29,884 bases of DNA from Salpingoeca rosetta (GCA_033442325.1 JAWQFM010000030.1:52802-82685); one strand, 5' to 3'. Positions 520 through 28,694 are shown, counted from the stretch's first letter. Program-made: numbers and translations. Notes: generated from the sequence alone by a model not told the origin.

Positions 520-3500
520 ATGTCCGGCGGAGAGAAGAGAGCAAGGGAGGAGGTGGAGGCGTTGCTGGCGCAGACGAAGGTGAAGGATGGGGTGAAGAAC
601 AAGATCAGGGCCATCGCCAACAACACGTGTCCGGGGGGAATAGAGTGAGTGCAAAAGCAACCAAAACGACGTGTTGCAACATGCATGCATGTGTTGGACA
701 CTAGGCCACAAGGACACTTCTTGTGGTTGTACTCGTGCTTATTCTCCCCCTCCCTCTCTGCTTGGCTTGTCCTTGTGTTGCAATGGGTGTGGTGTGGCTT
801 GCTGTTGGGTGTTCACGTGTGCGTGTCCTGTCCCCTCGCACCGCCTGGACACATCAACAGAGAGAGAGTGTGTGTGTGTGTGTTTGTGGCAGGTTGTGAC
901 TGACACCCTCATGTTTTTGCTGTCTCGATCCTCAGTCTTCTTGCTCATTTCATGACACACACCATTCATTTGTAATTACAGCTTGGGTGGTTATGGCCTC
1001 GGCGTCATTGAGGCGCGTGCGGTGGCCGAGGCGCTCAAGGACAACACCTGCCTCGAAACGCTCGAGTGCGTGGTGATGATGAATCTGCATCGTGTGATAT
1101 GCATGGTTGATTGGGATGGCGGTGTTGCATGTTGCACCCCTTTCTCCTCCCCTGCTTGCGCATGTTTGGACGTGTGTTCACCTTCGCTCCCTGCGTTTCC
1201 TTGTGTGCCTGCACAGCCTGGCAGTCAATTCCATCGGCGATGAGGGCGCTGTGGCGTTGGCGGAGATGCTGAAGCACAACACGGCCCTCAAACAACTCTA
1301 GTGAGTGTGTACACGCACACATGCACACATGTATGCTGCGTCACTGCCATTGCACCTTATCACGTGCACATGTGTGGTTGATGGGGTGGGGTTCAACGAC
1401 TGTGTTGACACCCACAACAATCATCATGACGCACGCATGTGGCATCATCCCCCTGTGTGGCATCCACCATACCGTCTTGACAGCCTGAGTGAGAACTCCA
1501 TCGGCCCTGAGGGCGCCGTGGCGTTGGCGGAGATGCTGAAGCACAACACGACCCTCACAGCACTCGAGTGAGTGGAAGCTCCTCTTTGCAATGTGTGTCT
1601 TTAGGCGCTTCTTCCGCAATACCCGTGTGCAGATGGAGGCACCGCAAGCCACCCACGATGTCTGTGCGACTTGCTTGTTTGACCAACAAATGCTTCCATC
1701 CTTCATATGTGCCACAAGTGCTGCCACATCCTGTGCAATTTGCATTTGCCCCCTTTGCTTCCGCCATTGTGACTTCAATGTCGTAGGACCTGATGTGCGA
1801 GCGAGTCCGCGTGCACGTGGTCCATCTGCAACCCACTTTTATCCATGACACTGACACGTGTTGCTTGCCCACCCGTTCCCCTGCTCTTCCAACATGCACT
1901 TCTTGCCACTTGCAGCTTGCGTAACAACTCCATCACCCCAGTTGGCGGTGCGGCGCTGGGTGCCGCACTGGACGAAAACCGCACGCTGGAAACACTCTGG
2001 TTTGTCGCTTGTGCTGCGCCTGCCTCATGAACGCCTGTGTCCTGTTGTGGATTTGTGTGACCAATCGCCACTCTTTTGAGTGCACGCCACACTGTGTGTT
2101 CCTCTTTACTTGCTTGCATTTCTCCACAACCCTCCTGACCAACCCTCCTGACGCACACACCACACTTGCTGCTTGTTCCCAACCACACACTACCACCACG
2201 TGTCCTCGTTCAGTATTCGGAAGAACTCCACCGCCACCGCCCGCGCCTTTGGTGCCGCGCTGCCCGTCGACCGAGAACTCATCACAGACTGGTCAGTCAA
2301 TGCGTGCTTCCACTCTAGTCGTTCGCTCCTTGCCTTCTCTCTACCCTTCACCTCACGCACACACGCTGCGTGATGCTTGCATCCAATGTCGCGTGGGATC
2401 ACAGGTTTGGCGACGATGAGGGCAACGCCGCCTTCGACGAAGCACGCGCGGAGAAGAAGCGGCAGCATGAGCAACTGTTTTCCGCCTGCAGGGATGGCGA
2501 CGCTCCCGCTGTCACGTCCCTCATCGAGCAGGACAATACAGACATCAACCAACAGGACAAGCAGGTATGTTCATTATGTGTGTGTGTGTGCTGTGCTTGT
2601 ATGTGAACGGCGCTCGCTCATGGTTGCACCGGCCGTGCGTTCGTTTCCAACAGATCCTCACCACACGTGCCATGCCCCTTGCTGCCCCCACCCATCCACA
2701 GGGCGACACGCCACTGCACGTTGCCTGCAGGCACAACCATCCCGCCGTCGTGGAGCTACTCCTGAAGAAGGGCGCAGACACTGCCGTCAAGAACAAGAAG
2801 GTGTGCTTCGCGTCGTGTTGCTGTTTCTGAAGACGTGACACGACTGCTTCTTTGCTTTGCGCTGTCCTCCCCCTCTCCCTGCTTCCCTCCTTCCTCAACT
2901 CATGCGTTTTACCTTTCCAACACACGCAGGGAGAGACGCCCTACGATGCGGCACAAGCCAGCGGCCACGCTGCCATCACCAGCATCCAAGGGCTGAAACC
3001 AGGCGGCAAGCCTTCGGAGCAACCACAGCAACAACAGCAGCAGCCAAAACAAGAGCCACCTGCGCCCACTCCTGCCGCCGGACCGAAGCAAGAAGAACAA
3101 GCAGCGCAAGACGTGAGTGATCAGAAGAGTGCTTGCTTGCAACGCACAAGCATATGCATCACGTCACCCATGCCATTCCTTCATCACGCTCTCCGTGGTC
3201 TCGTATCAAGCATAATCATGATGTCTCACACAACCATCACCACCACCACCACCAGCAGCAGCCCGAGCAGGCGCGCAGGGAGCGTCTCCAGCAGCGCATG
3301 CGGGAGGTCATAGCACGCTTCAACGCGACCATGGCGGGCAGGGCCAAACTCATCTTTATTGGTCAGGGGCGCGCCGGCAAGACTTCCACGTTCCACTCGC
3401 TCATGGGTCACATGTTCAACAAGCATGAGCACTCCACCCTTGGCGCCACCTCAACCGACCTCGCCGTCATTGTCGAATCAATGGACGTTCACGACTGGCA

Positions 3501-3650
3501 GGTGTGTACCCTTGTCTGGTGCGAGCATGTGATGTGTGCGACGCATGGGTGTGAAGAGAGGTGTTGTGAGTGACTCGATGACACGCACACACACACACGC
3601 ACGTACACACACACACACACACACACACATCCGCACACACACATACACAT

Positions 3651-3684
<34 letters not shown>

Positions 3685-6600
3685 CCTTTGCAGGAGCTGG
3701 ATGCGGAGATCTCGGAGTTGATGCGCAGCCTCTGCGGAACGGCGCTGGCGCAGGAATCTGGCGTGGACTTGCAGATGAAGCAGGCGATGATGAAGGCGAA
3801 GGCCGACTTGGGGAGCCGCGTTGCCCAGCACCAGCACCAACAGCGGCAACAAGAAGCCGAGAAGGCAGAGAAGGCAGCTGCTGCCAAACTGAAGCAAAGA
3901 CAGTCACAGCAGTCAATGGAGACGCGGTCACGGCCATCCTCCCGCACGTCATCATCGACCGTCCCAAAGCCCAGCAAGACGTCTCAGATGTCAGCATCTG
4001 CGCCCACGAAGCAGGCCACCCTAACCCCTTCCAGCCAAAGTGATGCTGCTGCGCGTGACAACAGCAGCAGCACCACGCCCGGCATGTCTGCTGAGGAAAT
4101 GGAGAAAGCGATCAAGGAGTTCAACATGGATGCCGTCATGGGCGAGGGCAAAGCACGGGTAACGTTCAAGATCTTTGACCTGGGCGGCCAGTCCACCTTC
4201 TACATCTTTCACCCTTTCTTCCTCACCAAGTGAGTACTTCTGTGTGTTGTGTGTGTGTGTGTGCGTGTGTGTGCGTGTGCGTGTGTGTGCGCATATCAGT
4301 CCCAGTGCACGTGTAATTGCTGTCACCCTAGATTCGGCACCCTCCACCTCACGGCCCCCCCACCCTACCTTCAACTCACACCCCCCCACCACACATACAA
4401 CCCACACCAGGTACGCGGTGTACCTGCTGGTGTTCTCCATGGAGGACCTGTTGCACGAAGACGAGAGCCATCGGGCAGAGGCGTGGGAGTTTATGGAGCA
4501 CTGGCTCTCCTCCCTCCACCTCCACGCAAAGGGCGCACCCGTCATCATCGTCGGCACCTTCGCTGATGTGGTCAGTCAGCGGAAGCAGCACGAGAACATC
4601 TCGCGTCACATCTACAGTCGCCTGCGCCACAATCCCGCCTTCCCTGGCGTCATCCACAACGACAAGCATGGGCTGTGGTTCTGGCCCGTCGACAACACCA
4701 AGTCCATCAATGACCCCATGATCCAGGACCTGCGCCAGACCATCTCCTCCACAGCACTGGCGCAGGAGTACGTGAGCCAGGAGGTGGCTGTGCCATATCT
4801 CCACCTCTACGACAAGCTCAACGCCATCGCCCGCGATGAAAAGCGGCCGCTGCTCACGTTTGATGAGGTGGTGCAGATTGCGCGCACATGTGGGCTGCGC
4901 ACACGTGAGGAGACAAGAGCCTGCCTGCAGTTCCTGCACTTGTACTCCATGGTGCTGTACTACGACAGCGTGCCTGGCATGGAGGACTGTGTGATCCTGA
5001 GTCCGCAGTGGGCGGTGGACATGATGACGCGCGTCATCCGCAACTTTGATCTGCACCACGACGTGCGTGATGGCAAGGCGAGGGCCGTTGGTGCCGACGT
5101 GTGGGACGACCTGGTTGACCGCGGCATCCTGCACCGCCGTCTACTTGATGTGCTGTGGAGGGACTTGGAAGGTGGCATGGTTGACCCGTTCCTCCAACTC
5201 ATGATGGAGTACGGGTTGTGTATCCGGTACACGGCACCAACGGTGCTGCTGCCCGGTCCTCAACAGCAACAACAACACCACCAACAGTACCTCGTCCCAG
5301 CCATCCTGCCGATGACGCTGGAGGACGAACAGGCGTCCTCGTCGGTGACTCTGAGCACGGCAGCAGCACAGCAAGCAAATCCGTATGTTGGATATGAGGA
5401 GAAGACAGCCTACGTCGCCTTCAGCCTGAGGGAGTTCAAGAGGGGTGTAAGCGCCAAGATTGCAGACACGCAGCAAGCCTCCTTCCTGCCAGAGGGCCTG
5501 TTCCCGATGGTTCTGGCACGCGTGATGGCACACATGCAACACGGTGCAGCAGAACCGCCCATGTTGAGCCGCACAGACGCCGTGATCTTCATGGACGTGG
5601 CTGAGATCGAGATGCAGCTCGTGCCGGCTGTTGGCGGCATCAAGATCAAGGTCATGACTGCACGTCCTCGCACGCTGCTGCACATGCTGTACGACACCAT
5701 CACTACAGCTGTCACGCAGCGCTACCCCGAGCTCAAGGCCACGTTGCTGCTGCCATTTAATGACACAAGGCTGCTGTTCTTCGAGGACGTGCACACCCAC
5801 CACACGAACAAGAAAGCGCTTCGCGTTGGCCGCTCACAGCTGCTGTCACCAGAGGATCTGGTCGCCAAATATGGTCCACTCTTGCCAGTTATGGGTCAGC
5901 AGGACAAATACGACGCCTTCATCAGTTACAGGTGGGACATGTGTGTGTGTGTATGTGTGTGTGTGTGCGTGCATGAGTGTGTGCATGAATGTATGGTGCG
6001 ATCTGGGTGTCTTTCCTTCCCTCTCTCTTCCTTTCTTATTTCGACATTCACCACCACGCCACAGGCAACGCGGCAACCGGGGTTTGGTGATGACCTTGTC
6101 CCCTAAGTTGGAACAGCACGGACTGGTGACCTTTGTGGACAGCAACAACTTGGAGACAGGCGTCAACTTCAAGTACGCGTGCATGGCAGCTCTTCAGCAC
6201 AGCGTGGTCGCCTGTCCCATCGTGTCTGTCGGTGCCATCCATCAGATGCAGCATCGCTCGGCCACACTGGACACTAGAGTGGACCCTGCGGTCACGGTCC
6301 CCGCGCCCCTAAGACTGACTTTGAATGGGTTTACATGCAACAATCCGTCTGATAATTTCCGCATGAGCCGCGGCCTGTGTTAAGAACTTGAGTACGATTG
6401 CAATCGTTCCGAGGGGTAACGTCTTGTTGGAGTGGATGCCGATGCTGGAGCTGCAGCAGCTTGCTCGCCCAGCATCCAGACAAGGTCCACCTCCGCCCGC
6501 ATCGTTCCGCTCTTCCTCGGCAGTGGCTGGCACGACAGCAGTCACCATGTTATGAGCGCGGGCGGAGGGTGAGCGAGTACGACTCGTTTGACCGCCTGAA

Positions 6601-6906
6601 GAGACTGGCAACGAAGTTGCCGGATGTTGTGAGCAAGAACACGGCGGCAGCGCTGGACCAGTTCTTTTCACAGGTGCTGCGATTGCCACCGCCCCAGCAG
6701 CACAAAGAGCGTGCGGGAAGTGGTGCTGTCGCTATTTGACATTGATGCGGTGATTGCGGTGGATGCCGGTGTGGACCGCACGTCGCAGCTGCGCGACATT
6801 GCGGAGAAGGTGCGCCAGGTCGTCGTCTCTGCCGGCAACGAGGAGCAAGCAGCACTGGGGCCAGGCACAGCGCGTGCATCCAAGAAGGTATGCGCGCTGT
6901 GCTGTG

Positions 6907-6965
<59 letters not shown>

Positions 6966-6978
6966 GGTGGGTGGGTGG

Positions 6979-7014
<36 letters not shown>

Positions 7015-7411
7015 GTGTATGCAGGCGCACTCTTTCCTCTCATCCACTTGGCGTGCGTGGTGTGTCTTGCTCAACCCCGCCAACTTGTCTGCCGTGCAGT
7101 CCTTCTTCTCCTCCTTCTCCACCTCCTTCTCCTCCACAACACCTGTTACACCGCTGCCCGCCACCCCTTCCTCCTCGTCCTCAAACTCATTCGAGCCGGC
7201 GCTGACTGCATGGCTCAAACGCCACTCGCTGCTACCGCACGTTAAGTCCGCGCTGATAGAACACAGCATCGACACGTTGGAGGTGCTGGTGGTGTCCATA
7301 CAAGAGGGTGACCTGACCAAGGAGGTACTCAGGGAAGCCGGTGTGAAAATTGGACCGGCAATCAAGCTGATTCGGGAGGCAAAGAAGTGTGACGTGGACA
7401 GTTTTGTGTAG
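520..7411 (+). CDS. Roco-family protein A (LRR-ankyrin-ROC-COR-TIR-SAM), multi-exon; TIR exon disrupted in this sequence (possible pseudogene or sequence error)
   Basis: Hand-spliced GT-AG exons with consistent phases: 520-644, 982-1065, 1217-1300, 1484-1567, 1916-1999, 2214-2291, 2405-2564, 2702-2800, 2930-3112, 3256-3501, 3694-4229, 4411-5931, 6065-6887 (disrupted), 7100-7411. Recognisable LRR, ankyrin (GDTPLHVAC), P-loop (GQGRAGKTS), COR-like, TIR-like (YDAFISYR) and SAM-like motifs. Confidence 0.85.
982..2291 (+). repeat. LRR exon array of Roco A: four 84-nt phase-2 exons plus one 78-nt capping exon
   Basis: Exons 982-1065, 1217-1300, 1484-1567 and 1916-1999 are each exactly 84 nt and encode one 28-aa ribonuclease-inhibitor-type LRR (e.g. 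[27 protein letters not shown]). Exon 2214-2291 is a degenerate 78-nt unit. Confidence 0.9.
2405..2990 (+). other. Ankyrin repeat region of Roco A (~2.5-3 repeats)
   Basis: [30 protein letters not shown] | [33 protein letters not shown] | [13 protein letters not shown]; the middle repeat is a 99-nt (33-aa) phase-0 exon at 2702-2800. Confidence 0.9.
3340..5880 (+). other. ROC GTPase plus COR domain of Roco A
   Basis: G1 GQGRAGKTS (3361-3387), G2 STLG, G3 FDLGGQ (DLGGQ at 4177-4191), YLLVF, G4-like VIIVGTFAD (GTFAD at 4553-4567). These are followed by COR-like motifs [41 protein letters not shown] and [13 protein letters not shown]. Confidence 0.85.
3581..3683. repeat. Intronic imperfect (CA)n microsatellite
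   Basis: Direct reading; lies in the intron that splits the ROC domain. Confidence 0.95.
5909..6760 (+). other. TIR-like domain of Roco A (interrupted and frameshifted)
   Basis: YDAFISYR|[54 protein letters not shown] matches TIR_2-type motifs. After an unrelated segment, NVLLEW (Glu codon 6430-6432) and, in shifted frames, RIVPLFLG continue the domain. Confidence 0.75.
6910..7018. repeat. Intronic (GT)n/(GGGT)n microsatellite
   Basis: Direct reading. Confidence 0.95.
7190..7390 (+). other. C-terminal SAM-like domain of Roco A
   Basis: [29 protein letters not shown]...[25 protein letters not shown] fits the SAM pattern WL..L..Y/V...F/L....ID...L...LT...L...G+..G....L. The exon at 7100 is in frame with the phase-0 donor at 6888. 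Confidence 0.7.
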
Positions 7412-7929: not shown

Positions 7930-10140
7930 TTAGAAGCGGTTCACCAGCGAGACGTCAGGCCACCGCCAATGGTAGTTTGTGGAGTAGCAGTTGCGCAGCA
8001 CAACGCAGCCAATGTCTGACAGCCCGTGCATGTTGTCAAAGGCGCAACTCTGCAGAACAAGCCGCTGAATGCCTTGGAAGCAATCAAATTCCATGATGGC
8101 ACACTTGTGAAGGTGGCAATTGAATACTTCTCGACAGCCTGTGATTGACAGGCTGCCAGGACCATCCGACACAACATTGGAGGGGGCAATAATGGGCACA
8201 TGCTGAGCAGGAGCGGCCCTCACAGTCAATTCGTCAAGAAAAAGCGTGCCAATGGAGGTGAAGCCAACCCGCCCACAACAACTGTGTAGCGAGGCCCTGT
8301 GGCAGCGCGCAATGTCTTGATCGAGCGTGCAGGACGTGAGGCGAAGGTATTGTCGGTCAGAAAGCAGGTGGATGCCGTGCATTGGGTACTGGAATCGCCC
8401 GTGGAGAGTTAACGACTGCACCGCCGGCCCGACCCATTCGCAGTGAAGCTCGCCTTTGACAAGGCCATGCAGCTCTTTCACACAGGGCGGCACCGGCCCA
8501 TCCACGTTGACGCCATCGACACAAACGTGCACATGGTCAGGGATACCATTCAGGGCACTGACATTCCTCACACAGTCCTTGAGCACGAGCTTGTCGGTGC
8601 GCCGGCCGAGGTCCACAAGAAACTCGCGTGACAACGCTCTACGAAACAACTTGAGTGCCAGCACATTGGCGTGCACAAAGTCGGGCAGCTGCGGCATCGT
8701 GAAGGGTGTTTCATCGGCAATCACAATTCTGTCAACGCGAGTGGGGCAAGTGAACTTCTTCACTTTTGATTGCAGTCGCAACTCAATGTGGGTGGCGTTT
8801 GGCAAGTGCAGCAGTCTTGGCACTGCCAGCATGTGTGCGAGCGTAATACGGGTGCCATCGAGTTTGTCATTCTGCAACTGCACCTGACGGAGGCTGAGGT
8901 GTTGCGCCGCGGTCACCACCGCGTCATCGCCGCTCAGGTGTGCGCCAACAACGCCGAGCTTTTCCACCCCGAGCAGCGGCGACAGGTCCAACGAGCGGCC
9001 GTACAAGCGAGCAAGCCTGATTTCCGGAATGCCCGCGTTCAACATGCCCAAGTCGGAGATGGAGGTGCTGTCGCTCAGTTCAAACCGCTGCACGTCTTGA
9101 ATATCGCCACGAAGGGTCCGCTGATTTCGAGCACACCACGTCACACGTTTCACGTCATGGATTGTAACGTGGCCAATCTCAGTGGATTGGATGTCAAGGA
9201 AATCGATGTGACACGCGCTGAGCGACTCCAACGGACTTTGAATGACCAGGTTCACGTCAACCCCACGCGAGTTGGCGAGCAGCGACGTGCGGAGCTCATG
9301 CCACCGATCAGCATCACCCTGGCACATGAATTCAGCCGTGAGCGAAAACAGTGCTGGGGCGAACGCAGCGGTGACTGTGACCCTGTCACCAACGTGCTGT
9401 TGCTGCTTCTGAGAGTGCTGTGGTTGGGCGCTTCGGGTGCTTGTCCCTCCTGCATCCGTGGACGTGCTGGTGCCTCCTTCTTGCTTGCTTGCATCTGCAC
9501 CGTGCACACTGCTGTCGTGCTCACTGGCGTCGAGTGCCTGATTCACGTCTGCGGCCCACGACTCGACGTCTTCAAGGGACGTGTACGTCACGTGTCCAGA
9601 GCGTGCGAACCGGTGCCAGAAGCCCTGCGTCTGTGGAGGAGACTGGAGCCTGGAGCGGAGAAAGGTGCACGTGCTTTTCCACGCCACACCCAGCCAACAA
9701 TACGCGAGGAAGCGGTTCTCCAACCACACGACGACATGCGCAGTGTCGTCTTCTTGTAAAGGGAGCGCGGTGGCTGGCATGGCCATCGCGAGGGCCATCA
9801 TTGCCGAGGTGGTCGCTGCGTGGGCGGGCACAAGAAGGTCCCGTTGGAACGCGTCAACCCAGTGCTCAGTCGTTCGGCTCTGGCGATTCCACACGTTTGT
9901 GCTCTTTGTGAACACGGTGGACAGGCACCACTTGGGCATGGCCCACGGCAGGTCATGGTACAGCTCGCGGCAAGTCAACATGAGGTTGAAGTACGCGCGC
10001 GCCACGTCGCGAGGAGGGCACTCCTGGGGCTTGCTGTCCAGCTGTCCCCCGAACACCCCGGTGCCCTTGTACTTTGCTTCCTGCTCTGCTTCCAACACCA
10101 ACGTCTCCGCCACCAGCGCCCACGCTGCGCCGTCGTTCAT
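7930..10140 (-). CDS. Intronless 736-aa hypothetical protein; degenerate LRR-like C-terminal region, possible divergent F-box-like N-terminus
   Basis: Uninterrupted ORF from ATG at 10140 (MNDGAAWALV) to stop at 7930. The upstream in-frame extension to 10329 is CAA/CACAA low-complexity sequence and probably leader. The C-terminal half shows recurring LxL motifs (LSPLLGVEKL, LPNATHIEL, VQSLTLHG, FQGIQRLVLQSC, LSDIGCVVLRNC). Confidence 0.8.
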   Translation of the reverse strand: MNDGAAWALVAETLVLEAEQEAKYKGTGVFGGQLDSKPQECPPRDVARAYFNLMLTCRELYHDLPWAMPKWCLSTVFTKSTNVWNRQSRTTEHWVDAFQRDLLVPAHAATTSAMMALAMAMPATALPLQEDDTAHVVVWLENRFLAYCWLGVAWKSTCTFLRSRLQSPPQTQGFWHRFARSGHVTYTSLEDVESWAADVNQALDASEHDSSVHGADASKQEGGTSTSTDAGGTSTRSAQPQHSQKQQQHVGDRVTVTAAFAPALFSLTAEFMCQGDADRWHELRTSLLANSRGVDVNLVIQSPLESLSACHIDFLDIQSTEIGHVTIHDVKRVTWCARNQRTLRGDIQDVQRFELSDSTSISDLGMLNAGIPEIRLARLYGRSLDLSPLLGVEKLGVVGAHLSGDDAVVTAAQHLSLRQVQLQNDKLDGTRITLAHMLAVPRLLHLPNATHIELRLQSKVKKFTCPTRVDRIVIADETPFTMPQLPDFVHANVLALKLFRRALSREFLVDLGRRTDKLVLKDCVRNVSALNGIPDHVHVCVDGVNVDGPVPPCVKELHGLVKGELHCEWVGPAVQSLTLHGRFQYPMHGIHLLSDRQYLRLTSCTLDQDIARCHRASLHSCCGRVGFTSIGTLFLDELTVRAAPAQHVPIIAPSNVVSDGPGSLSITGCREVFNCHLHKCAIMEFDCFQGIQRLVLQSCAFDNMHGLSDIGCVVLRNCYSTNYHWRWPDVSLVNRF

Positions 10141-10403
10141 GGTGAGAGTTGTGCTGTGTTGTGTTGTGTTGTGTTGTCTTGCTTGTTGTCTTGTGTTGTT
10201 GTGTTGTTGTGTTGCAGTGGAAAGTTGTTGCATATCTTTAGTCGCTGTTCCGCCTTGTTGCTTGCAAGCAAACACTCGCCGTCCGATTTGGTGTTGTGTC
10301 AAACAAACAGCAGTGTCCTGTTCACGCACTGCACGCTCTCACGCTCCCACACACTTAACCAACTGTTGTCCTGCCTGTTGTTCGTCTCTCAGCTCAACGT
10401 TGA
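10141..10403. promoter_or_regulatory. Short divergent (bidirectional) intergenic region
   Basis: Only 263 bp separate the minus-strand ATG (10140) from the plus-strand ATG (10404). The region is rich in GTT/GTGTT repeats. No specific motif was identified. Confidence 0.5.
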
Positions 10404-13400
10404 ATGGCCATTTTCCTCTCGCTGCTGACCGTCGCGTCAGTGTTGCTGGTGCGTGTGAGGCCGGCGTGCATGTGTGTATGTTCTTCCACTTTGACTCTGA
10501 GGCTCTTGGCTTCTTGTCTCGCGCTCAGCACTTGTTTTCTTGCTTTGTACTCCTATTGCGCGGCGTGCATGCGGACATGTGTTGTTGTACACACACTGAC
10601 TTTCTTGTCTTATTCTTTCTAGGTGGCCACTGGACAGCCGTCCGGCTTTCATGGCTGGTGCGTGCGTGTGCTGATGCTCATGTGACGTGGAGGGTGGTGG
10701 TGGTGGTGGTGGTCACGCATGTATGCGCTTGCAGCATTGTTCTCTGTGTCTTGGCAGCGTGTGTTCCCTCGTGGCGCAGTCTGCCTGCCTGAACAGTTTT
10801 CCCATGGCAAACACCACCGCTGCACACTGCACACTTCACACTGCTTGCTGCACATTGGACAAGTGCACACGTTCACCTTCCTTCTTCTGCGCTGCCTTAC
10901 ATTCACACGCCAACACAAAACAAACTCGTGCATGATTTGTGTCTGTTTGCAGGGCCAACAACTTTGGTGGCTATCTGAGTTTCACCTGCCCTTCCAACCA
11001 GGTCCTTGACGGCTGGTATGGCGTCTTCAGCAACAGCCGTCGTAAGTGCCTGCTTGGGGTTTGCTTGTTGTGATAGATTGCAATTGTGCCGTCCTGTTTG
11101 TTTGTTTGTCCTGCGTGCTTGTTGAATCAGCATCTCACCAACATGTATCTCTGTGTGTTGATGTGCACCCGCGTGACAGTTGACCGTCGCTACTCTTTCC
11201 GATGCACCAACGGTGAGACATGACAGCGAAGATGTGCCTTTGTGTGTGCGTGTGCGTGTGCGTGTGCCTATGCGATGGGTGCGGCCACATAGATGCCTGC
11301 TTCCATACGAACGCACCATCACCATTCTCATCCCCCACCTTCTGACCCCACCTCGTTTCCCTCCTGCCTTCAGTCAACTCCATCACGTACCGCAGCTTTG
11401 GTGGCTATGAGAACAGCTACTATGGCGGGTTCACAAAGACATACCCCAACGGTCAGGCCATCTACCGCATTCAGGCTGGCCACTCCGATGGCTACCGCGA
11501 TCGGTGAGAGAGAGAGTGTGTGTGTGTGTGTCTGGGCCGTTTGGTACACCTGTGTATCCCTTGTTATTGCTGCAGCCACGCTTCGGTCACTGTGTGTGCT
11601 TGCTCTTATGTGATCAGCGTGTCAGCAAACTGCTGACCCAAGTTGCTGGTCCATCTGTGTGCATTGCACCCTGTACACATGCTGATTAACGTGCACACCA
11701 CGATCGTCTGCTGCTGTCCCCCCCACACACACACACAGTCGTTGGCGCATTGGCTGTGCAGACCACACAAACAACAACGGCCCGTACCACAGCAGCTGCT
11801 CGTGGAGTGGATGGACCAACAACTGGCCCAGCTACTACCCATACTACTACTGGTTCCCCTTCTACTACGTAAGTAGTGAATGCTGTTATGTGTGAGTGAG
11901 TGTGTGCGTTCGGGGCAGGGGGTGGACAATCGTGCAAGGGAGGCTGTGATCATGACTACATGCACCACCACCCACACATACATATACACGCTTAGCTGTG
12001 TGAATGTTCATGACCTGTCTGGACCAACTCACCATGTGTTTGTGCGATGCTTGCTTGTGGTGTAGTACTTCTACTACTTCTACTCCCCCTTCTACTACTA
12101 CCACGTAAGACGCCCTGTTTTGTGCTTGCCCGTCGTTTGTACTGTGCATGCATGTGTGCACATGTGAACGCCTTCTTTGTGTCGCTGCCCCACAATCCCA
12201 TGTGACACAAGCTCTTCCACTCAACTCACATGACCGTCCTCCTCCTCCTGCCCGCGCCTGCGCCTGACTCTTGCAGTACCCCACGACCAGCTTCACGGCA
12301 AACAGCAAGTATGTGATCCACGGTGTGCAGTCCGACTTCAGCTACACCTTCCGTGACCGCCGCTGGCGCTTCTACCAGTGCCGCGTCTCCTGCCGCAGGT
12401 ACATGACTGCATACGTGTGTGTGCGCGCGTGTGTGTGTGGTTTTGTGTGTATAAATGTCTGCGCCTCCTCTGCTCACTCACCCACTCACTTATTGACATA
12501 CTCACGCCCGCGTCCACAACAGCGGATGGGTCCAGTCTGGTACCGAGTGCACGTGCCCAAGTGGTTCGTACCAGAGGGGCAACGATTGCGTCAGCAGCCG
12601 CAAGTGTGGCCGTGGCCAATACGCCGCCTCGTGAGTCAAAACCGCACGCGTGTCCTCTGCTTGAGCCTGCCTCCCTTGCAGAAGTGCACTGCACTGCGTT
12701 TCGCCGTGCATCGCTGCGCCGCCTCGTGAACACACATTTATTCACACACATTTATTCACACACGCACACACACACACACACTCACACACGCACACACATT
12801 CATGCACACACGCACACTCTCAATCCCTCTCACCTCTTAGCCTCTTCCCTCCCCGCTCTCCAAAACTCAGGTCCAGCAACAACCGCTACTGCTACGACTG
12901 CCGCCCTGGCACGTTCCAGTCTGACTCGTCACATACGGACACAACGTGCTCCTCCTGCCCCGCCGGCAAGTTCCAGGACGACTATGGCCGTGCCGACTGC
13001 GAGACCTGCCCCAGCTCCCAGTACAACCCATACACCGGACGCTCGTCGTGCCGTGACTGCTCCTCCGGCTACTACCGCAGCAGCCCCAGCACGCAGACGC
13101 GCTGCCAACCCGGATACCGCTGCCCTGGCTCGTGCTCCCGCATTGCATGCTCCCCAGGCACATACCAGAACAGCTACCGCCAGGTGTCGTGCAAGTCCTG
13201 CGAGGCTGGCAAGTACCAGACCGAGTCTGGCGCGTCCAGCTGCAACAACTGCGCCAACGGCTACTACACCACCTCTGCCGCGTCTGCCCCCAGGCGCTGT
13301 CAGCCCGGCTTTGCCTGCAGCTCGTGCAACCGCCGCGCGTGCAACGGCGAATTCTACCAGAATGCGGCCGGCGAATCCGAGTAAGTTCATCAAGCATACG

Positions 13401-19380: not shown

Positions 19381-19479
19381 GTCTTTTTGATTGTACGCGT
19401 GCACACGTAATCGCACCCATCACGCACACACCAACTGCTGCAGCCACTCACACGCACGCACGCTTGCAATTTCACGTGG

Positions 19480-21340
19480 ACGCCACATCCCGACATCAAC
19501 CACAACAGCAGCCGCCACCATTGCACCTGTTGTGATCGCGTGCTGCCAGTACACACCACCTTCACCTCCCACATCATCATCATCATCATCGTCCCAGCAC
19601 TGCTGCCACCACTACCCACCACCAACGACAGCAACGAGCTCAGGGCATCTAATGCTGTTGGCTCTTGGACCATCACGGCGCTGTTGGAAGAAACGCTAGC
19701 AGCAGCAGTGGTTGTGGTGGTCGTGGTGCACGCCATGGCAACAGCAGCGACAGCTGATGAGGTGGTGGTGGTGAATGTGGTGGTGCTTGCATTCCTCACG
19801 AGTTCCAGCAACAGCAAGGAGGTGGCCATCGTGCTTCTGGTGAGCACGCATGTGCTGGGTGTTGTTGGTGCCACCGCTGACAACAGCAGTTGTTGCGGTG
19901 AGCGACAACGGCGATGAAGAAGAAGATGGATGTATGTGGTGGGGCATGGTACGCAGCCAACCTTCCTTTGTGGTTGGCTGTGCAATTGGCGTGCGCACAC
20001 AGATAGTGGCGATGACGAGACGGCTGCCAATCAAATCACTTCCCACCTGAGAAACCACCGCATCGTGGCTCATGCACGCGTGCACGTCGTTCTTCCTTCA
20101 GACCAGCCATCGACAGTGCAGCGTTGCTGTGTGCCACGCGGTGCTTGATGATGCGTCGTTGTTGTTGTCACTGCGTCGGCTGTTTGTTAACACGTATGCC
20201 GTGCATGCCCACCTTCCTTCCTCCCTCCCTTCCTTCCTTCCTTGCTGTTCTCTGCTCTGCCATTCTCCCTTGCCAGTGTGTGTTTGGTCGCTGGTTGCAG
20301 TGTTGTGATGATTCTACCTTGCATGTTCAATCGTTCTCCAACAACAATACATTGGAACAGAGCAAAGACATGAAGAGATGACAACAGCCCTCACACACGG
20401 GCACACACGCAACACCAACACGCACATCCAAGCAAGAGAGGAAGGCAGAACCAGAGACACAGCACAGCTCAAGATAACAGCCACATCGCATGGTGCCACT
20501 TGCAGTGCAGCCAAACAGCCAAGTGCAAGGGGGTCTGCAACAACGACAACAAGGGCGCAGTCATCCACAAGCCACCACTGTGTGTCAGGAGTGCTGCAGG
20601 GCACAGAAGACCCACAACGCAGGTCAGTCGACGACGCTATTGTTGCTGCGGCTGCTCTTGAACGCCTCGCACCAGTCCTTCAAGCAAGTCCCTCCAGTGT
20701 CAGCTGCACTTGGTTGCCGTCCTTGTCTGCTGGTGGTGCTGTCATCTGCACCGTGTCTCGTGGATGGCCTGCGTGATGAAGCAGAACGCGTCCAGCACCA
20801 CCACGACGGTGTCAGAGGGAAAGAAGTCGACGCTGCCGCGCACATCCATCAAGCCTGTTTGTGTGGTTCACAACACGAATCCACGCACGCGCAAGGCAGT
20901 ACCAGCAAGAGTGAGTGAGCGAGGTGTGTATGTGGGTGTGTGTGTGTGCGTGAGTGTGCGTGCATCAACGCAGGTGATGTGGAGAACACGCATGAGGAGC
21001 TGCAAGCGTGCCATCACATGGAAGCAAACCATCATCAGGAGGCAAAACACGCATGGACTCACTCACAAGCAAGGATGACGCAGCCACTTGCCACTGCCAT
21101 GGCCTCATGCATCGACGATGCCGTCGCCAGGCAGTGAGCCAGCTAGCCAGCTTTCAGTCAGGAAGGGAGTGTCCAACATCGTCGTGGGGGCAGCAGGCTA
21201 AGGGGGATCTTGCACGACTCTTCTCATGTGATTCGCACCACTGCCACCACACCCTTGTCGTTGTCAGCGCATGCTGCTGGTGCTGCTGCTGCTGCTGTGT
21301 TGGCGAGCAAGGCGAGGGAGATGGTCATTCATTCTGGTTG
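19480..21340 (-). pseudogene. Possible degenerate spliced gene on the minus strand, product unknown
   Basis: Coding-like minus-strand fragments: LMDVRGSVDFFPSDTVVVVLDAFCFITQAIHETRCR then a stop; CLLMMVCFHVMARLQLLMRVLHITC; and an S/T/A-rich tract at 19560-19900. There is a GTGAGT donor at 21066-21061, but no coherent model could be built. Confidence 0.25.
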
Positions 21341-22225
21341 CCACCGCGTTGGTGAGCGTAGCCACTACCGCTGATCCATGCATGGAGTGCAATGGTGGCT
21401 GGTGGTTGGTTGAGTGTGGTTGGTTGGTTGAGTGAGATGTGAGTGAGTGTTGGAGAGGGAAGGGGAACACGGGCTGAGGGGACGGAGGAAGGAAGGAGGA
21501 AGGAGGGTGGAAAGAAGGGAAATGGTGCTGTGGGTGGTGGAGGTTGTGTAGTCACACCAGTCGCACCAGTCAGTCAGTGGGAGAGAGAAGAGAGGGAAAG
21601 GAAAGGAAGTGGTGCACACTTCTGCACGTGGCATGGAGCAGCAGCACTCTCACCAGAGCAGAGAAGAGAGAGGAGAGAGGAGGGGAGAGGAGGGGAGAGA
21701 CTGAGAGAGGAGAGGGGAGAGGAGGCACTGCAGCACAGTCAATTCATCCACTGGCTGGTTGGGTGGTTTGTTGAGAGTGGTGGTTGTTGTGGGGAAAAAC
21801 AAACAAAGGAGAAGGAAGGAAAGGACAGCTGGCTGGCTGCATTGTGGAGGAAGATATGGGGAGTTTTCGTGGCTGGCGAGAGAGGAATGGTGGTGGAAGT
21901 CTTGATGTACTTTTCGTGGGGTGCGCCCAAGAAAGGCACACAGCAAGCAACACAAGAAGAGAAGGGAATCAGCAAGCACTGCAAGCAGGCGTGGGTTGTT
22001 TGGTTTGTGGTGTGTCCTCTCCAACTCCATTTCTAGATTTCTGCGTCGTTCCAGGTCTCACAGCACCCCAGCCACAACAAACAACAAGCAAGGGACAGAA
22101 GAGGGCAGAGAGGGAGGAGGAGAACAGACAAGGAGGAGACAGGGGAGATGGGTGACACCCACAGCAAGGCAGAGGGAGAGGGAAGAGAACCTGCCAACGC
22201 AAAGAACGCAAAAACAACAACAGCC

Positions 22226-23346
22226 ATGTCCGGCGGAGAGAAGTGGACGAGGGAGGAGCTGGAAGCCTTGCTGGCACAGACGAAGATGTGGCAAAGGGTG
22301 AAGGACAAGATCAGGGCCATCGCCAACAACACGTGTGGGGAAGCTGTCGAGTGAGTGCGAGCAACAACGACATGACATGTGTGTGCATGTTGGAGAAAAG
22401 AAAGAAGAGCACTCGCTGTGCTTCTTGACCACCCTGCTTCGCACGTCCTTGTCTTGCTTGAGTTGTTGTGTGTTGCTTGGCGTTCCTGTGCTTGCGTGTC
22501 CGATCGCACAACCTGGCCACATAAACGGAGAGTGTGTTTGTGGCAGTTTGTGACCTGCACCCTCACGTTTGCTCTCTTTCACTCTCATGACACACGATTT
22601 TGAATCACAGCTTCATGGGTGCTTCCTTTGACGCCGTTGGGGCGCGTGCAGTGGCCGAGGCGCTCAAGGACAACACCTGCGTCAAACGACTCTTGTACGC
22701 GGTGATGTGAGCTGCATTGTATGACACGCATGGTTGATTGTGTTGGTGTTGCATGCTCCTCCTCATTCATGTCTCTTCTTCTTCACACTTTGGATGTGCT
22801 CAACTTTGCTGCCTGCATTCTTGTGTGCACAGCCTGCGTGACAACTCCATCGGCCCTGAAGGCGCCGTAGCGTTGGCGGAGATGCTGAAGCACAACACAA
22901 CCATCACAGTACTTTTGTGAGTGTGAGCGCACACGTGCATTGAAAGACACTTGCTTTGAACATATGCTTGTGTGTGCTTGTATGGTTTTGTGTGTGCAGG
23001 TTCAACGGCTGTTTGCCACCCACTGTGCCCGTCACCCACTCATCACTCATCACCACCGCGTATGCTGTCATCCACCTCCTCCTCTCTCGTGTGTGTGTGT
23101 ACAGCCTGGATAGCAACTCCATCGGCGACGAGGGCGCCATGGCGTTGGCGGAGGTGCTGAAGCACAGCACGCCCCTTAAAGGACTTTAGTAAGTGTGGGC
23201 ATGTACATGCATTGCGAGACATTCGCTTGGAGCATGCGTGCGTGTGTGTTCCTGTGTGCAGACTCAACGACTGTTCACCACCTACTGTGCCCGTCACCCA
23301 CTCATCCCTCCTCATCACCGGGTATGTCATCAACCACTCGCTCCTA

Positions 23347-23423
<77 letters not shown>

Positions 23424-24627
23424 ACCGATTAAGCAATTGGTCGGAATTTCCATTAACGAAGAAACAAATTTTACCACATACCCAACCCACCGGCGTGTAC
23501 GTAGACTGCGGTTTTACACCGTTAACTGATAGGACTGACTGTGGTGGAGTCAGAATCACGTCAGGCCACGTACGGAAAAGTCTGCTCTTGCTACCGTGGA
23601 ACACTGGTGGGGACACACAATCTTTACGGTGGCTTACCAAAGGATGAGATGAAGCACAACGCGACCCTCAAGACATTCGAGTGAGTGAAGACATGCACGT
23701 GCGTCGGAGTCACTTGGTTTGAGCGTGTGATCATGAGCTTTGTGTGTGGTTTGCTGTGCAGCAAGTTCAACGGCTGTTCGCTACCCGAATGTAGTTATCA
23801 CCACTCATCACTCCTCACCACTACGTACGCTGTCATCAACCGCTCACTCCCAGCCTGGGGAGCAACGGCATTTGTGACCAGGGTGCTGTGGCGTTAGCGG
23901 AGATGCTAAAGCACAACACAGCCATCACACGACTCGTGTAAGAGCCGGCACGCACATGTATTGAAGGACATGGAGCGTGTGCGTGTTTGGTTTTTGATGC
24001 ACAGGCTCAACGGATGCTTGTCACTCACCGTGTGTCCGTCACTCATCACCCCTCAACCCCACGTACGCTACCATCAACTTCCACTCCTCCCATCTTATCT
24101 CTTGTGTGCACAGCCTGCGTGACAACTCCATCGGCCCTGAAGGCGCCGTAGCGTTGGCGGAGATGCTGAAGCACAACACAACCATCACAGTACTTTTGTG
24201 AGTGTGAGCGCACACGTGCATTGAAAGACACTTGCTTTGAACATATGCTTGTGTGTGCTTGTATGGTTTTGTGTGTGCAGGTTCAACGGCTGTTTGCCAC
24301 CCACTGTGCCCGTCACCCACTCATCACTCATCACCACCGCGTATGCTGTCATCCACCTCCTCCTCTCTCGTGTGTGTGTGTACAGCCTGGATAGCAACTC
24401 CATCGGCGACGAGGGCGCCATGGCGTTGGCGGAGGTGCTGAAGCACAGCACGCCCCTTAAAGGACTTTAGTAAGTGTGGGCATGTACATGCATTGCGAGA
24501 CATTCGCTTGGAGCATGCGTGCGTGTGTGTTCCTGTGTGCAGACTCAACGACTGTTCACCACCTACTGTGCCCGTCACCCACTCATCCCTCCTCATCACC
24601 GGGTATGTCATCAACCACTCGCTCCTA

Positions 24628-24698
<71 letters not shown>

Positions 24699-27102
24699 CC
24701 CCTCTCCCTCTCTCTTCTCTTGTGTGCACAGCCTGGGCGACAATGGCATCGGTGACCAGGGTGCTGTGGCACTGATGGAGATGCTGAAGCACAACACGAC
24801 CCTCGAAGAGCTGTTGTGAGAGTTTCATTCAAGGCGCCCACTCTGAGCGTGTGCTTGTTTAGTTGCGTTTGCTTTTGTTGTGCAGGAGGCTCAACGGCTG
24901 TTTGCCACCGTGTGCTCGTCATTCACTCATCACTCCTCACCACCGTGTATGCTCTCGTCGACCTCCCACTCCTCTCTGTCTCTCTCACACACTCCCTCAC
25001 ACATGCACACACTCACTCTCCCCCCCCACACACACACACTCTCTCTCTTGTGTGTCCACAGCCTGTACCGCAACTCCATCTACGATGAGGGTGCCGTGGC
25101 GCTGGCGGAGATGCTGAAGCACAACACAACCCTCACATATCTCGAGTGAGTCAGACATGCACATGCATTGAAGGCGCCAGCTTTGAGCGTGTGCTTGTTT
25201 GGTTGTGTTTGGTTTCGTGTGCAGCAGGCTCAACGGCTGTTTGCCGCTCACCATTTGCTCGTCACCCACTCATCACTCATCACCACCGCGTGTGCTGTCA
25301 TTCACCTCCTTCTCTCTCTTGTATGTGCGCAGCCTGGGTGGCAATTCCATCAGCGATGAGGGTGTTGTGGCGTTGGTGGAGATGAAGCACAACGCGACCC
25401 TCAAGACATTCGAGTGAGTGAAGACATGCACGTGCGTCGGAGTCACTTGGTTTGAGCGTGTGATCATGAGCTTTGTGTGTGGTTTGCTGTGCAGCAAGTT
25501 CAACGGCTGTTCGCTACCCGAATGTAGTTATCACCACTCATCACTCCTCACCACTACGTACGCTGTCATCAACCGCTCACTCCCAGCCTGGGGAGCAACG
25601 GCATTTGTGACCAGGGTGCTGTGGCGTTAGCGGAGATGCTAAAGCACAACACAGCCATCACACGACTCGTGTAAGAGCCGGCACGCACATGTATTGAAGG
25701 ACATGGAGCGTGTGCGTGTTTGGTTTTTGATGCACAGGCTCAACGGATGCTTGTCACTCACCGTGTGTCCGTCACTCATCACCCCTCAACCCCACGTACG
25801 CTACCATCAACTTNNNNNNNNNNNNNNNNNNNNNNNNNNNNNNNNNNNNNNNNNNNNNNNNNNNNNNNNNNNNNNNNNNNNNNNNNNNNNNNNNNNNNNN
25901 NNNNNNNNNNNNNNNNNNNNNNNNNNNNNNNNNNNNNNNNNNNNNNNNNNNNNNNNNNNNNNNNNNNNNNNNNNNNNNNNNNNNNNNNNNNNNNNNNNNN
26001 NNNNNNNNNNNNNNNNNNNNNNNNNNNNNNNNNNNNNNNNNNNNNNNNNNNNNNNNNNNNNNNNNNNNNNNNNNNNNNNNNNNNNNNNNNNNNNNNNNNN
26101 NNNNNNNNNNNNNNNNNNNNNNNNNNNNNNNNNNNNNNNNNNNNNNNNNNNNNNNNNNNNNNNNNNNNNNNNNNNNNNNNNNNNNNNNNNNNNNNNNNNN
26201 NNNNNNNNNNNNNNNNNNNNNNNNNNNNNNNNNNNNNNNNNNNNNNNNNNNNNNNNNNNNNNNNNNNNNNNNNNNNNNNNNNNNNNNNNNNNNNNNNNNN
26301 NNNNNNNNNNNNNNNNNNNNNNNNNNNNNNNNNNNNNNNNNNNNNNNNNNNNNNNNNNNNNNNNNNNNNNNNNNNNNNNNNNNNNNNNNNNNNNNNNNNN
26401 NNNNNNNNNNNNNNNNNNNNNNNNNNNNNNNNNNNNNNNNNNNNNNNNNNNNNNNNNNNNNNNNNNNNNNNNNNNNNNNNNNNNNNNNNNNNNNNNNNNN
26501 NNNNNNNNNNNNNNNNNNNNNNNNNNNNNNNNNNNNNNNNNNNNNNNNNNNNNNNNNNNNNNNNNNNNNNNNNNNNNNNNNNNNNNNNNNNNNNNNNNNN
26601 NNNNNNNNNNNNNNNNNNNNNNNNNNNNNNNNNNNNNNNNNNNNNNNNNNNNNNNNNNNNNNNNNNNNNNNNNNNNNNNNNNNNNNNNNNNNNCAGCGGC
26701 AGCAGGAAGCCGACAAGGCAGAGAAAGCAGCAGCTGCCAAACTGAAGCAAAGACAGTTGCAGAATGCAAAGGAGACACAGCCACGGCCATCATCCAAGAA
26801 GCCACCACCGACCGTCCCCAAACCCACCAAGGCATCTCATGACTCAGCATCTGCGCCCACGAAGCAGGCCACCCTAAACCCTTCCAGCCAAAGTGATTCT
26901 GCTGCCGGCAATTACAACAACACCGCCACCGCCACGACCGGCATGTCTGCGGAGGAGATGGAGAAGGCGATCAAAGAATTCAACGTGGACGCCGTCATGG
27001 GCGAGGGCAAAGCGCGTGTCACGTTCAAGGTGTTTGACCTGGGCGGTCAGTCCACCTTCTACATCTTCCACCCTTTCTTCCTCACCAAGTGAGTAGGATG
27101 CA

Positions 27103-27146
<44 letters not shown>

Positions 27147-27159
27147 CTTGCGTGCGTGT

Positions 27160-27206
<47 letters not shown>

Positions 27207-28694
27207 ATCACCGCTCCCCTCAACAACCCCACTTCCGCTCACCCTCCCCTCCTTACCCCCATCTTCACCCACCCGCAAACAGGTACGCGGTGTACCTGCT
27301 GGTGTTCTCAATGGAGGACCTGTTGCACCAAGACAAGAGCAAGCGGGCTGAATCGTGGGAGTTTATGGAGCACTGGCTCTCCGCCCTCCACCTCCACGCC
27401 AAGGGCGCACCCGTCCTCATCGTCGGCACCTTCGCTGACAAGATCAACGAGAGGAAGCAGCATGAGCAGATATCACGCGACATCTACAGCCGCCTGCGCC
27501 ACAACCCGGCCTTCCCTGGCGTCGTCCACAACGACAAGCATGGTCTGTGGTTCTGGCCCGTCGACAACACCAAGTCCATCAATGACCCCATGATTCAGGA
27601 CTTGCGCCAGTCCATCTCCTCCACAGCCTTAGCGCAGGAGTACGTGAGCCAGGAGGTGGCTGTGCCATACCTCCATCTCTACGACAAACTGATGGCACTG
27701 AGCAAGGACGACAAACGGCCGCTGCTCACCTTTGATGAGGTGGTGGATATTGGACGCACGTGTGGGCTGCGCACACGTGAGGAGACGAGGGCCTGCCTGC
27801 AGTTCCTGCACCTGTACTCCATGGTGTTGTACTACGACAGCGTGCCTGGCATGGAAGATTATGTGATCCTGAGCCCGCAGTGGGCGGTGGACACGATGAC
27901 GCGCGTCATCCGAAACTTTGATCTGCATCACGACGTGCGTGATGGTGCGGCAAGGGCCATTGGCGCGCAGCTGTGGGACGACCTGGTTGACCGCGGTATC
28001 CTGCACCGCCGTCTACTTGATGTGCTGTGGAGGGGCTTGGAAGGTGGCATGGTTGAGCCCTTTCTCCAACTCATGATGGAGTACGGGTTGTGTATCCAGT
28101 ACACGGCGCCAATGGTGCTGCTGCCCGGTCCTCAACAGCAACAACAACACCACCAACAGTACCTCGTCCCAGCCATCCTGCCGATGACGCTGGAGGACGA
28201 ACAGGCGTCCTCGTCGGTGACTCTGAGCACGGCAGCAGCACAGCAAGCAAATCCGTATGTTGGATATGAGGAGAAGACAGCCTACGTCGCCTTCAGCCTG
28301 AGGGAGTTCAAGAGGGGTGTAAGCGCCAAGATTGCAGACACGCAGCAAGCCTCCTTCCTGCCAGAGGGCCTGTTCCCGATGGTTCTGGCACGCGTGATGG
28401 CACACATGCAGCACGGTGCAACGGAACCGCCCATGTTGAGCCGCACAGACGCCGTGATCTTCATGGATGCTGCTGAGATCGAGATGCAGCTCGTGCCGGC
28501 TGTTGGCGGCATCAAGATCAAGGTCATGACTGCACGTCCTCGCACGCTGCTGCACATGCTGTACGACACCATCACTACAGCTGTCATGCAGCGCTACCCC
28601 GAGCTCAAGGCCACGTTGCTGCTGCCATTCAATGACACGAGACTGCTGTTCTTCGAGGACGTGCACACCCACCACACGAACAAGAAAGCGCTTC
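22226..28694 (+). CDS. Roco-family protein B, paralog of A with an expanded LRR array; incomplete because of assembly gaps
   Basis: Exon 1 at 22226-22350 (125 nt, [20 protein letters not shown]...[10 protein letters not shown]) matches A exon 1. LRR exons lie at 22611-25670. After the gap, the ROC exon (26694-27088, [19 protein letters not shown]) and the ROC-COR exon (27283-28694+) are colinear with A. Linking the two halves across the gap is an inference. Confidence 0.75.
22611..25813 (+). repeat. LRR exon-cassette array of Roco B with a ~1733-bp six-exon higher-order repeat
   Basis: Exons: 22611-22694 (cap), A 22833-22916, B 23105-23188, partial E ~23646-23680, F 23854-23937, A' 24114-24197, B' 24386-24469, C 24732-24815, D 25062-25145, E' 25333-25413 (81 nt), F' 25587-25670. 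A/A' and B/B' are offset by 1281 bp and F/F' by 1733 bp. The copies look identical, introns included. Confidence 0.9.
23350..23420. repeat. (CT)n microsatellite in the LRR-B intron
   Basis: Direct reading; homologous tracts at ~24631-24720 and ~29474-29617 differ in length. Confidence 0.95.
25814..26693. other. Assembly gap (880 N)
   Basis: Run of N. Confidence 1.
27106..27202. repeat. Intronic (GT)n microsatellite
   Basis: Direct reading; the homologous intron in gene A has a shorter GT-rich tract at ~4240-4290. Confidence 0.95.

Follow-up and report, generated by a model that had tools for sequence, protein, structure and literature searches.

The closest known counterparts of the genes treated here are the LRR-ROCO genes of brown algae, in which each leucine-rich repeat (LRR) is encoded by one 72-nt phase-2 exon, the exons are shuffled and the concave face of the repeats is under positive selection; they have been proposed to act as pathogen receptors (Zambounis et al. 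2012, PMC3341825; PMC11378527, 2024). Two genes of comparable layout, gene A (PTSG_10524, protein P0007) and gene B (PTSG_13066), are found in a stretch of 29,884 nucleotides from Salpingoeca rosetta (genome G000, scaffold C30:52802-82685; hereafter the window, meaning this whole stretch, in whose coordinates positions are given unless a scaffold is named). A first-pass annotation of the window had taken its host to be a probable choanoflagellate, in agreement with the best named protein matches, which are all S. rosetta PTSG_ entries, and had proposed a diversifying immune-like receptor family with LRR cassettes shuffled on a ROC-COR-TIR-SAM scaffold. The present analysis places both genes in a putative sensor-switch-effector family that exchanges its LRR cassettes, a view well supported at the genomic level, and we infer an immune function.

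The precedent on which the earlier proposal leaned, the one-LRR-per-exon ROCO genes of Ectocarpus, is of the design described in the publications cited above. Shared with the genes of Ectocarpus and kelp are the LRR sensor placed on Roc-COR, the coding of one LRR per exon, introns that are all of phase 2, an exon number that varies among paralogs and a presumed shuffling of exons. The differences lie in the repeat, which here is an 84-nt exon giving 28 residues of ribonuclease inhibitor (RI)/NLR type while the algal exon of 72 nt gives 24 residues, in the addition of ankyrin (ANK) repeats and TIR-SAM or PARP domains to what in the algae are plain LRR-ROCO genes (PMC3341825), and in the use of the same sensor module on two effector scaffolds. 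The two lineages, Opisthokonta and Stramenopiles, are unrelated and common descent is unlikely to explain the exon structure; the choanoflagellate family is an analogue and not a member of the brown-algal LRR-ROCO receptors. New here are the NAD+-using effectors and the sensor module common to two effector scaffolds, and no description of a choanoflagellate or Salpingoeca ROCO family like that of genes A and B was found in the literature searched.

Other immune receptors show partial likeness. With animal and plant NLRs the family shares the tripartite sensor-switch-effector layout, LRRs of RI type and a multigene organisation with hypervariable LRR faces, and with plant TNLs a TIR effector, reported as enzymatic in one paralog, but the switch is a Roc-COR small GTPase and not a STAND ATPase, and the LRR is N-terminal and the TIR C-terminal; an LRR-containing NLR family has gone undetected in choanoflagellates (Richter et al. 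2018). SARM1 resembles the family in its catalytic-Glu TIR, to which the TIR studied here has a weak match in PDB (E=0.005), in the formation of cyclic ADP-ribose (cADPR), found for the TIR of one paralog, and in having a SAM-like domain in the same protein, but differs in its order (ARM-SAM-SAM-TIR), the TIR here being followed by a single weak SAM and the ARM replaced by LRR-ANK-Roc-COR. The variable lymphocyte receptors (VLRs) of lamprey and hagfish likewise use LRR cassettes as the unit of diversification and carry hypervariable residues on the concave face. VLRs are assembled somatically in lymphocytes from flanking cassettes by a gene-conversion-like process, whereas the S. rosetta arrays are all intron-containing genes of the germline in which no somatic alteration was seen.

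Family size and exchange of LRR cassettes

Genes A and B are paralogs in an S. rosetta family of about 40-50 LRR-Roc-COR genes. When the Roc-COR exon of gene A was searched against the genome (55.4 Mb in 68 scaffolds) 65 matches at no fewer than 39 loci were obtained, ten of these loci being at least 92% identical to gene A at the protein level and eight more about 75%, and the architecture recurs in some 30 of the annotated S. rosetta proteins, which are 900-1728 amino acids (aa) long. In a contig of another species, that of protein P0002, the sequence begins at the Roc domain and so offers no upstream LRR exons. A 27-nt core of the cassette gave 126 genomic matches (at most 3 mismatches) as against none for the reversed control, and these matches form arrays with a period of ~265-285 nt. 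The large family expected in the first-pass annotation is thus present in Roc-COR loci, cassette cores and annotated proteins alike. A comparison of the LRRs of an intact paralog with PDB gave the NOD2 LRR (E=2e-38) and ribonuclease inhibitor, and the repeats are therefore taken as 28-residue units of RI/NLR type; neither NACHT nor NB-ARC appeared when the window was scanned with Pfam, nor do the Pfam lists of the ~30 paralogs contain them. UniRef names most of P0007-P0031 "non-specific serine/threonine protein kinase" where the Pfam lists hold no kinase domain, a name that is probably misleading and derived from LRRK similarity.

Cassettes were collected from 5-kb upstream pieces of the 9 closest paralogs and from 9 further arrays, with the more distant Roc-COR clades excluded. 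The 19 arrays yielded 94 variable cassettes, every one of them 84 nt long, open, flanked by AG/GT and of phase 2-2, with an intron of ~180-200 nt after each LRR exon. Their number differs between close paralogs, as had been claimed from genes A and B: in gap-free arrays two cassettes stand between a first, cap LRR exon and a terminal exon of the "NSITPVGG" type in gene A, p3, p7 and p8, four in p4 and p6, five in p10 and eight to nine in the arrays on C27, C28 and C34, the range over arrays being from two to at least nine. In paralog p10 (C36:33893-43284) there are two copies of the terminal "NSITPVGG" exon, separated by 467 nt and, flanks included, 99% identical, which is a recent tandem duplication of an otherwise single exon.

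Most cassettes, when compared together with 100 nt of intron on each side, have their closest relative in an array on another scaffold at 91-100% identity, and the best matches of the three LRR exons of gene A are in three different paralogs; its cassette at 1217 is 100% identical with its 100-nt flanks to one cassette on C26 and that at 1484 is 97% identical to one on C29. Clustering of cassette types revealed the arrays to be mosaics in which the first and last positions are anchored and the internal order varies. Types are found in permuted order, B before J in p5 and J before B in the C15 array, N before C in p5 and C before N in C27, and a block D-P-Q is common to p10 and the C32 array. 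Along the part of the gene outside the repeats the paralog nearest to gene A switches from one comparison window to the next, and maximum-likelihood trees of five segments contain well-supported clades that are in conflict, each tree being rejected by the others (approximately unbiased (AU) test, p<=0.011 and mostly <0.001). These observations agree with the proposal that the sensor is varied by exon duplication, loss and conversion; the history of the LRRs is incongruent with that of ROC-COR. The symmetry of the units means that repeats can be added, deleted or replaced in frame when arrays undergo unequal crossing-over or gene conversion with one another.

The sensor is not confined to one type of gene. 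The 5' module of gene A, ~700 nt comprising the untranslated region, exon 1, intron 1 and cap, is 93% identical to that of a locus on C34 (8900-21600) and 96% to that of one on C27 (1036000-1048500), and 82% to that of gene B. These two loci have the same exon 1, cap and cassettes, but downstream of the array the Roc is divergent and is accompanied by COR-A and a PARP-like catalytic domain, and BLASTP of their Roc-COR against the Roc-COR exon of gene A gave 26% identity over 38 aa (E=0.004). Thirteen PARP-type loci were found in the genome, several of which adjoin cassette arrays (C2, C20, C28). The cassettes of gene B are 75-81% identical to those of any other array, yet its Roc-COR is 93% identical to that of gene A. 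As gene A shares its module with PARP genes and gene B joins a distant sensor to a Roc-COR close to that of gene A, sensor and scaffold have separate histories.

The ten young-clade loci, in eight independent places, and most of the arrays and of the PARP-type loci are situated 13-80 kb from scaffold ends; near-end members or arrays occur on C4, C13, C14, C15, C23, C26, C27, C28, C29, C30, C32, C34, C35 and C36. About 20% of the genome lies that near an end, and eight out of eight places would be expected by chance at ~2e-6. Arrays of TTAGGG gave 284 matches in the genome; among the matches listed, these fall on few scaffolds and none is next to the loci studied.

Effectors, predicted contact residues and competing readings

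Formation of cADPR in E. coli, with triggering of a Thoeris reporter, is reported for an isolated TIR of S. rosetta (2026 preprint 10.64898/2026.04.20.719644), and the tested domain is given as TIR 1034-1255, with catalytic Glu 1118, of a 1352-aa protein (supplementary table of 10.64898/2026.04.20.719644; UniProt F2UB80). Paralog p5 on C13, annotated as PTSG_12359 (P0014), contains exact copies of two long fragments of this TIR, and residue 1118 of PTSG_12359 is the E of DNVLLEW. The LLEW motif is kept in all annotated members except A and B, and in nine of the ten young paralogs the TIR frame is open with LLEW. The suggestion that the TIR is an effector is in line with the activity reported for this one paralog.

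The p5 locus (C13:1705251-1716000) holds at least eight variable cassettes, has 1871 N in gaps and has an identical pair of cassettes flanking the gaps. As the start of its annotated protein falls within the array, the 1352-aa model published for PTSG_12359 is N-terminally truncated.

The x positions of the motif LxxLxLxxN form the concave face of an LRR. When the variability of the cassette was analysed by position, an entropy above 3 bits (12-14 residues) was found only at unit positions 2, 3 and 26 and at the split codon 28, all of them x positions, with moderate variability at positions 25, 5, 8 and 9 and an almost invariant remainder. Over all pairs, pN at the four positions is 0.60, as compared with a framework pS of 0.21 and a divergence of 0.36 in 90 nt of flanking intron, so that the predicted contact residues change faster than both synonymous and intron sites. 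Parsimony on a tree of 86 units gave a dN at the four positions of 3.7 times the framework dS; omega came to 1.55 within the variable codons (binomial p=0.002) and to 0.45 for the framework. Because this count is a home-made one on short recombining units it is rated as supportive and not decisive, and in that sense the pattern fits diversifying selection on the predicted ligand face. Few paralogs, a conserved order of LRR exons, congruence of these with the ROC-COR phylogeny, and lack of positive selection were the testable outcomes that the first-pass annotation had named as fatal to its proposal, and it was refuted by none of them.

The reading which we favour, and which we regard as rather probable, is that genes A and B belong to a germline multigene family of cytosolic LRR-ANK-Roc-COR-TIR-SAM proteins forming a sensor-switch-effector defence system. 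In such a system the sensor would be the LRR solenoid of RI/NLR type that the 84-nt phase 2-2 exons encode, and binding of a ligand to the LRR face would release the Roc-COR switch, which would take the role of NACHT or NB-ARC in NLRs. Oligomerisation through SAM may then gather the TIRs, which would cleave NAD+ to cADPR, and the output may be signalling or depletion of NAD+ in defence against non-self such as bacteria or viruses. On this reading the family diversifies over evolutionary time, in the germline, and nothing suggests somatic rearrangement: no rearranged joints beyond repeat ambiguity were found in the short-read contigs of gene B and its ~100 RNA reads, and no skipping joints, the exon skipping also proposed by the first-pass annotation, among the few RNA reads on its array, which at a depth of ~5 says little. 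More tentatively, and as quite possible although we lean slightly away from it, a pool of 84-nt LRR cassettes near chromosome ends, exchanged ectopically among Roco scaffolds with TIR-SAM or PARP effectors, might constitute a diversifying germline system of non-self receptors in a single-celled organism devoid of canonical NLRs.

Several points weigh against a defence function. The TIR frame of gene A is broken in the reference, in which gene B is incomplete; and the SAM_2 match of gene A reaches 18.5 bits, under the Pfam cut-off of 20.5. The DNA runs all probably come from a single strain, which bears on LRR-number polymorphism. The scaffold ends are not established telomeres and repeated genes may themselves end scaffolds. 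The selection count combines parsimony with the Nei-Gojobori method (NG86) and uses no codon model, and the contrast between variable positions and framework could be inflated where frameworks and introns are made uniform by gene conversion.

The alternative that survives best accepts the family and its cassette turnover as real and gives them a non-immune purpose, such as the sensing of environmental or bacterial cues that govern behaviour and development, the recognition of self, mates or kin, or trafficking, the variable face then serving a general diversification of ligands or partners. S. rosetta responds to bacterial lipids and enzymes, and other Roco proteins, LRRK2 and those of Dictyostelium, work in signalling and trafficking. 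Expression of the genes is low but present in ordinary cultures, and choanoflagellate TIR proteins with Ank and other domains are listed with no known function (Richter et al. 2018). TIR and PARP effectors acting on NAD+, fast contact residues, turnover of copies, a pool of sensors shared by two effector scaffolds and near-end positions do, however, make up together the usual signature of non-self recognition, and the closest analogue, the brown-algal family, has been read as immune; a non-immune purpose is thus considered unlikely, though it deserves to be taken seriously.

Less probable still, and to our mind improbable, is neutral birth-and-death with concerted evolution at recombination-prone ends, in which many members would be pseudogenes and the variable positions unconstrained. 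The evidence for recombination is strong, the TIR of gene A is out of frame in the reference, and the framework pS, being lower than the intron divergence, points to homogenisation or to constraint at the DNA level. An omega of 1.55 at the four positions, whose divergence also exceeds that of the introns, argues against mere relaxation because relaxation alone gives at most 1; the open TIR frames with LLEW in nine of the ten young paralogs, the motif kept in all annotated members but A and B, the arrays free of stop codons and the existence of spliced RNA are likewise not what neutral decay would leave.

Genes A and B in the window

Gene A is located on the plus strand at 520-7411, where its spliced model is identical to the annotated PTSG_10524 protein up to the TIR. 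Exon 1 (520-644, 125 nt), which belongs to this identical part and ends in phase 2, is followed by the cap LRR exon (982-1065, 84 nt, phase 2-2), whose core is kept in paralogs, and by two variable cassettes with an intron between them (1217-1300 and 1484-1567, each 84 nt, AG/GT-flanked and of phase 2-2). The terminal LRR exon (1916-1999, 84 nt, AG/GT, phase 2-2) is of the "NSITPVGG" type, type A, which is kept in all TIR-SAM-type paralogs. The four full 84-nt LRR exons attributed to gene A by the first-pass annotation are hence present as the cap, the two cassettes and the terminal exon. After a degenerate LRR-like exon of 78 nt (2214-2291) come three ankyrin exons (2405-2564, 2702-2800 and 2930-3112; Pfam Ank E=2.9e-11 for the second), and ankyrin matches in PDB were obtained for paralog P0011. 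The Roc GTPase (Pfam E=1.4e-6) consists of a P-loop exon (3256-3501) and an exon with a low-complexity insert and the DxxG motif (3694-4229), the long insert splitting the domain. The following exon (4411-5931) contains the end of Roc, COR-A (Pfam E=3.1e-19), COR-B (E=1e-4) and the start of the TIR (YDAFISY). According to Pfam Roc is directly adjoined by COR, the arrangement by which ROCO proteins are recognised.

The TIR exon of gene A (6065-6887) has a weak TIR_2 match (Pfam E=0.0042), and the last exon (7100-7411), on the same strand, holds the SAM-like domain (SAM_2 E=0.0023) and the stop codon and is the segment that diverges most between paralogs. At 6230-6720 the TIR exon has five insertions of 1-2 nt of homopolymer type, unlike the nine aligned paralogs, which all keep the frame, and an insert of ~137-154 nt (~6262-6415) that is unique in the genome and has no counterpart in these nine. 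The catalytic LLEW motif exists in the DNA and is out of frame in the reference; the PTSG_10524 annotation bridges the breaks with invented introns and loses the LLEW core. The TIR of gene A is thereby either a pseudogene or poor reference sequence.

Gene B (22226-28694, plus strand) runs into the second of two gaps of N (25814-26693 and 28695-29113), both of which conceal sequence. It shares with gene A exon 1, the cap LRR and ROC-COR, as was first claimed, the nucleotide identities being 87%, 83% and, for the Roc-COR exon, 93%. Exon 1 (22226-22350, the annotation starting at an upstream in-frame ATG at 22148) and, after intron 1, the cap LRR exon (22611-22694) have stranded RNA reads at low depth, many of them derived from paralogs. 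Next come the LRR exons L1 (22833-22916) and L2 (23105-23188) of a block X, a segment that is probably an artefact of the reference (23424-24099, containing a 222-nt insert at 23424-23645 and a surplus block Y with a truncated exon at 23646-23680 and an L4 copy at 23854-23937), copies of L1 (24114-24197) and L2 (24386-24469), L5 (24732-24815), L6 (25062-25145), the 81-nt L3' (25333-25413) and L4 (25587-25670). Beyond the first gap lie an exon of the Roc insert (26694-27088) and the Roc-COR exon (27283-28694), which enters the second gap (Pfam COR-A E=5e-18; COR-B was also found). All these exons are on the plus strand; a 771-nt island after the second gap (29114-29884), to which no strand is assigned, carries a block X repeat with an L2 copy (29229-29312).

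The array as given in the reference thus consists of the cap, eight 84-nt exons, one of 81 nt and one truncated, and three of its complete LRR exons fall inside blocks that are 100% identical, block X being repeated at 22819-23420, 24100-24700 and 29114-29600 and block Y at 23646-24099 and 25379-25813. The part 22200-25813 was checked with reads from two independent DNA runs, one set of RNA contigs and one raw stranded RNA run, the RNA evidence for gene B amounting to ~100 reads at a depth of ~5. The 222-nt insert takes the place of the first (5') half of an LRR exon. It is unique in the genome, neither DNA run gave any depth over it, and it is probably chimeric sequence that arose in assembling the reference. 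According to independent DNA depth block Y is single-copy and block X, by k-mer depth, about two-copy. DNA contigs of 601 nt join 25262-25378 directly to 23646-24129, and a 274-nt RNA contig runs 25104-25145, 25333-25413, 25587-25670 and 24114-24180 with GT..AG joints, confirming the splice sites of three LRR exons (joints 25145 to 25333, 25413 to 25587 and L4 to L1). From the depth of the insert and of the blocks and from these joins the order of gene B follows as cap-L1-L2-L5-L6-L3'-L4-L1(-L2)-?, that is nine supported exons plus the content of the gap, the reference having one surplus X..Y copy around the chimeric insert.

In consequence the at least ten complete LRR exons first counted in gene B hold for the reference, whereas the reads support nine and what the gap contains. 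The statement that each LRR is a symmetric 84-nt exon stands for the four exons of gene A and has to be relaxed for its 78-nt exon and for the 81-nt and truncated exons of gene B; similarly, the domain order of the ROC-COR-TIR-SAM scaffold is right and is seen intact only in paralogs outside the window, the TIR of gene A being broken in the reference and the end of gene B unassembled.

At its left edge the first gap begins in an intron that in the independent data continues into another LRR block, and at its right edge it ends in mid-exon, within the Roc insert; the reading of gene B across 25814-26693 presumes continuity and frame. Measured against gene A, no less than ~2.5 kb must be absent at this place, where the reference has 880 N; the lost part should extend from the terminal LRR and the 78-nt exon through the three ANK exons to the first exon of Roc. 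At the 3' end the island passes from the block X repeat into unique T-rich sequence and then into N only, and the downstream C30:82686-86685 reads all N, with the TIR-SAM end of gene B unassembled. The annotated PTSG_13066 model, which splices over both gaps and ends in the island, is an artefact.

That A and B differ in LRR number mainly because the assembly is gapped and rich in repeats, as the unsupported X..Y block and insert, the two gaps, the misplaced 771-nt island and the chimeric gene B model might suggest, is very improbable, gene B keeping eight supported variable or cap-distal exons against two in gene A after correction, an RNA contig spanning four of its exons and gap-free arrays elsewhere having two to nine cassettes.

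The inserts at 23424-23645 and ~6262-6415 were also considered as one mobile element, a candidate that was rejected since they align locally no better than shuffled sequences do (p=0.22) and both are unique in the genome. Between genes A and B lie a large gene of cysteine-rich repeats on the plus strand (12378-19535), in which TNFR_c6 repeats are numerous (E down to 2e-38) and are joined by one of ephrin-receptor-like type, and a minus-strand open reading frame of 799 aa (7930-10329) that is without a Pfam match. A scan of the window with Rfam gave no match.

Meaning for choanoflagellates and for Roco genes

For work on these genes the reference assembly and the models PTSG_13066, PTSG_10524 and PTSG_12359 are unreliable within the arrays. 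The cADPR-forming TIR of S. rosetta is by the present analysis linked to a candidate sensor, and as S. rosetta is genetically tractable a direct test of their joint function is possible. Choanoflagellates are the sister group of animals and so a reference for the pre-animal state, and if the defence reading is true the family would be an independent solution that fills the gap left by the undetected NLRs of choanoflagellates. It would also be the second case, unrelated to that of the brown algae, in which a Roco scaffold has its LRRs shuffled as single exons, a recurrence which argues that this design is a recurrent route to receptor diversity.

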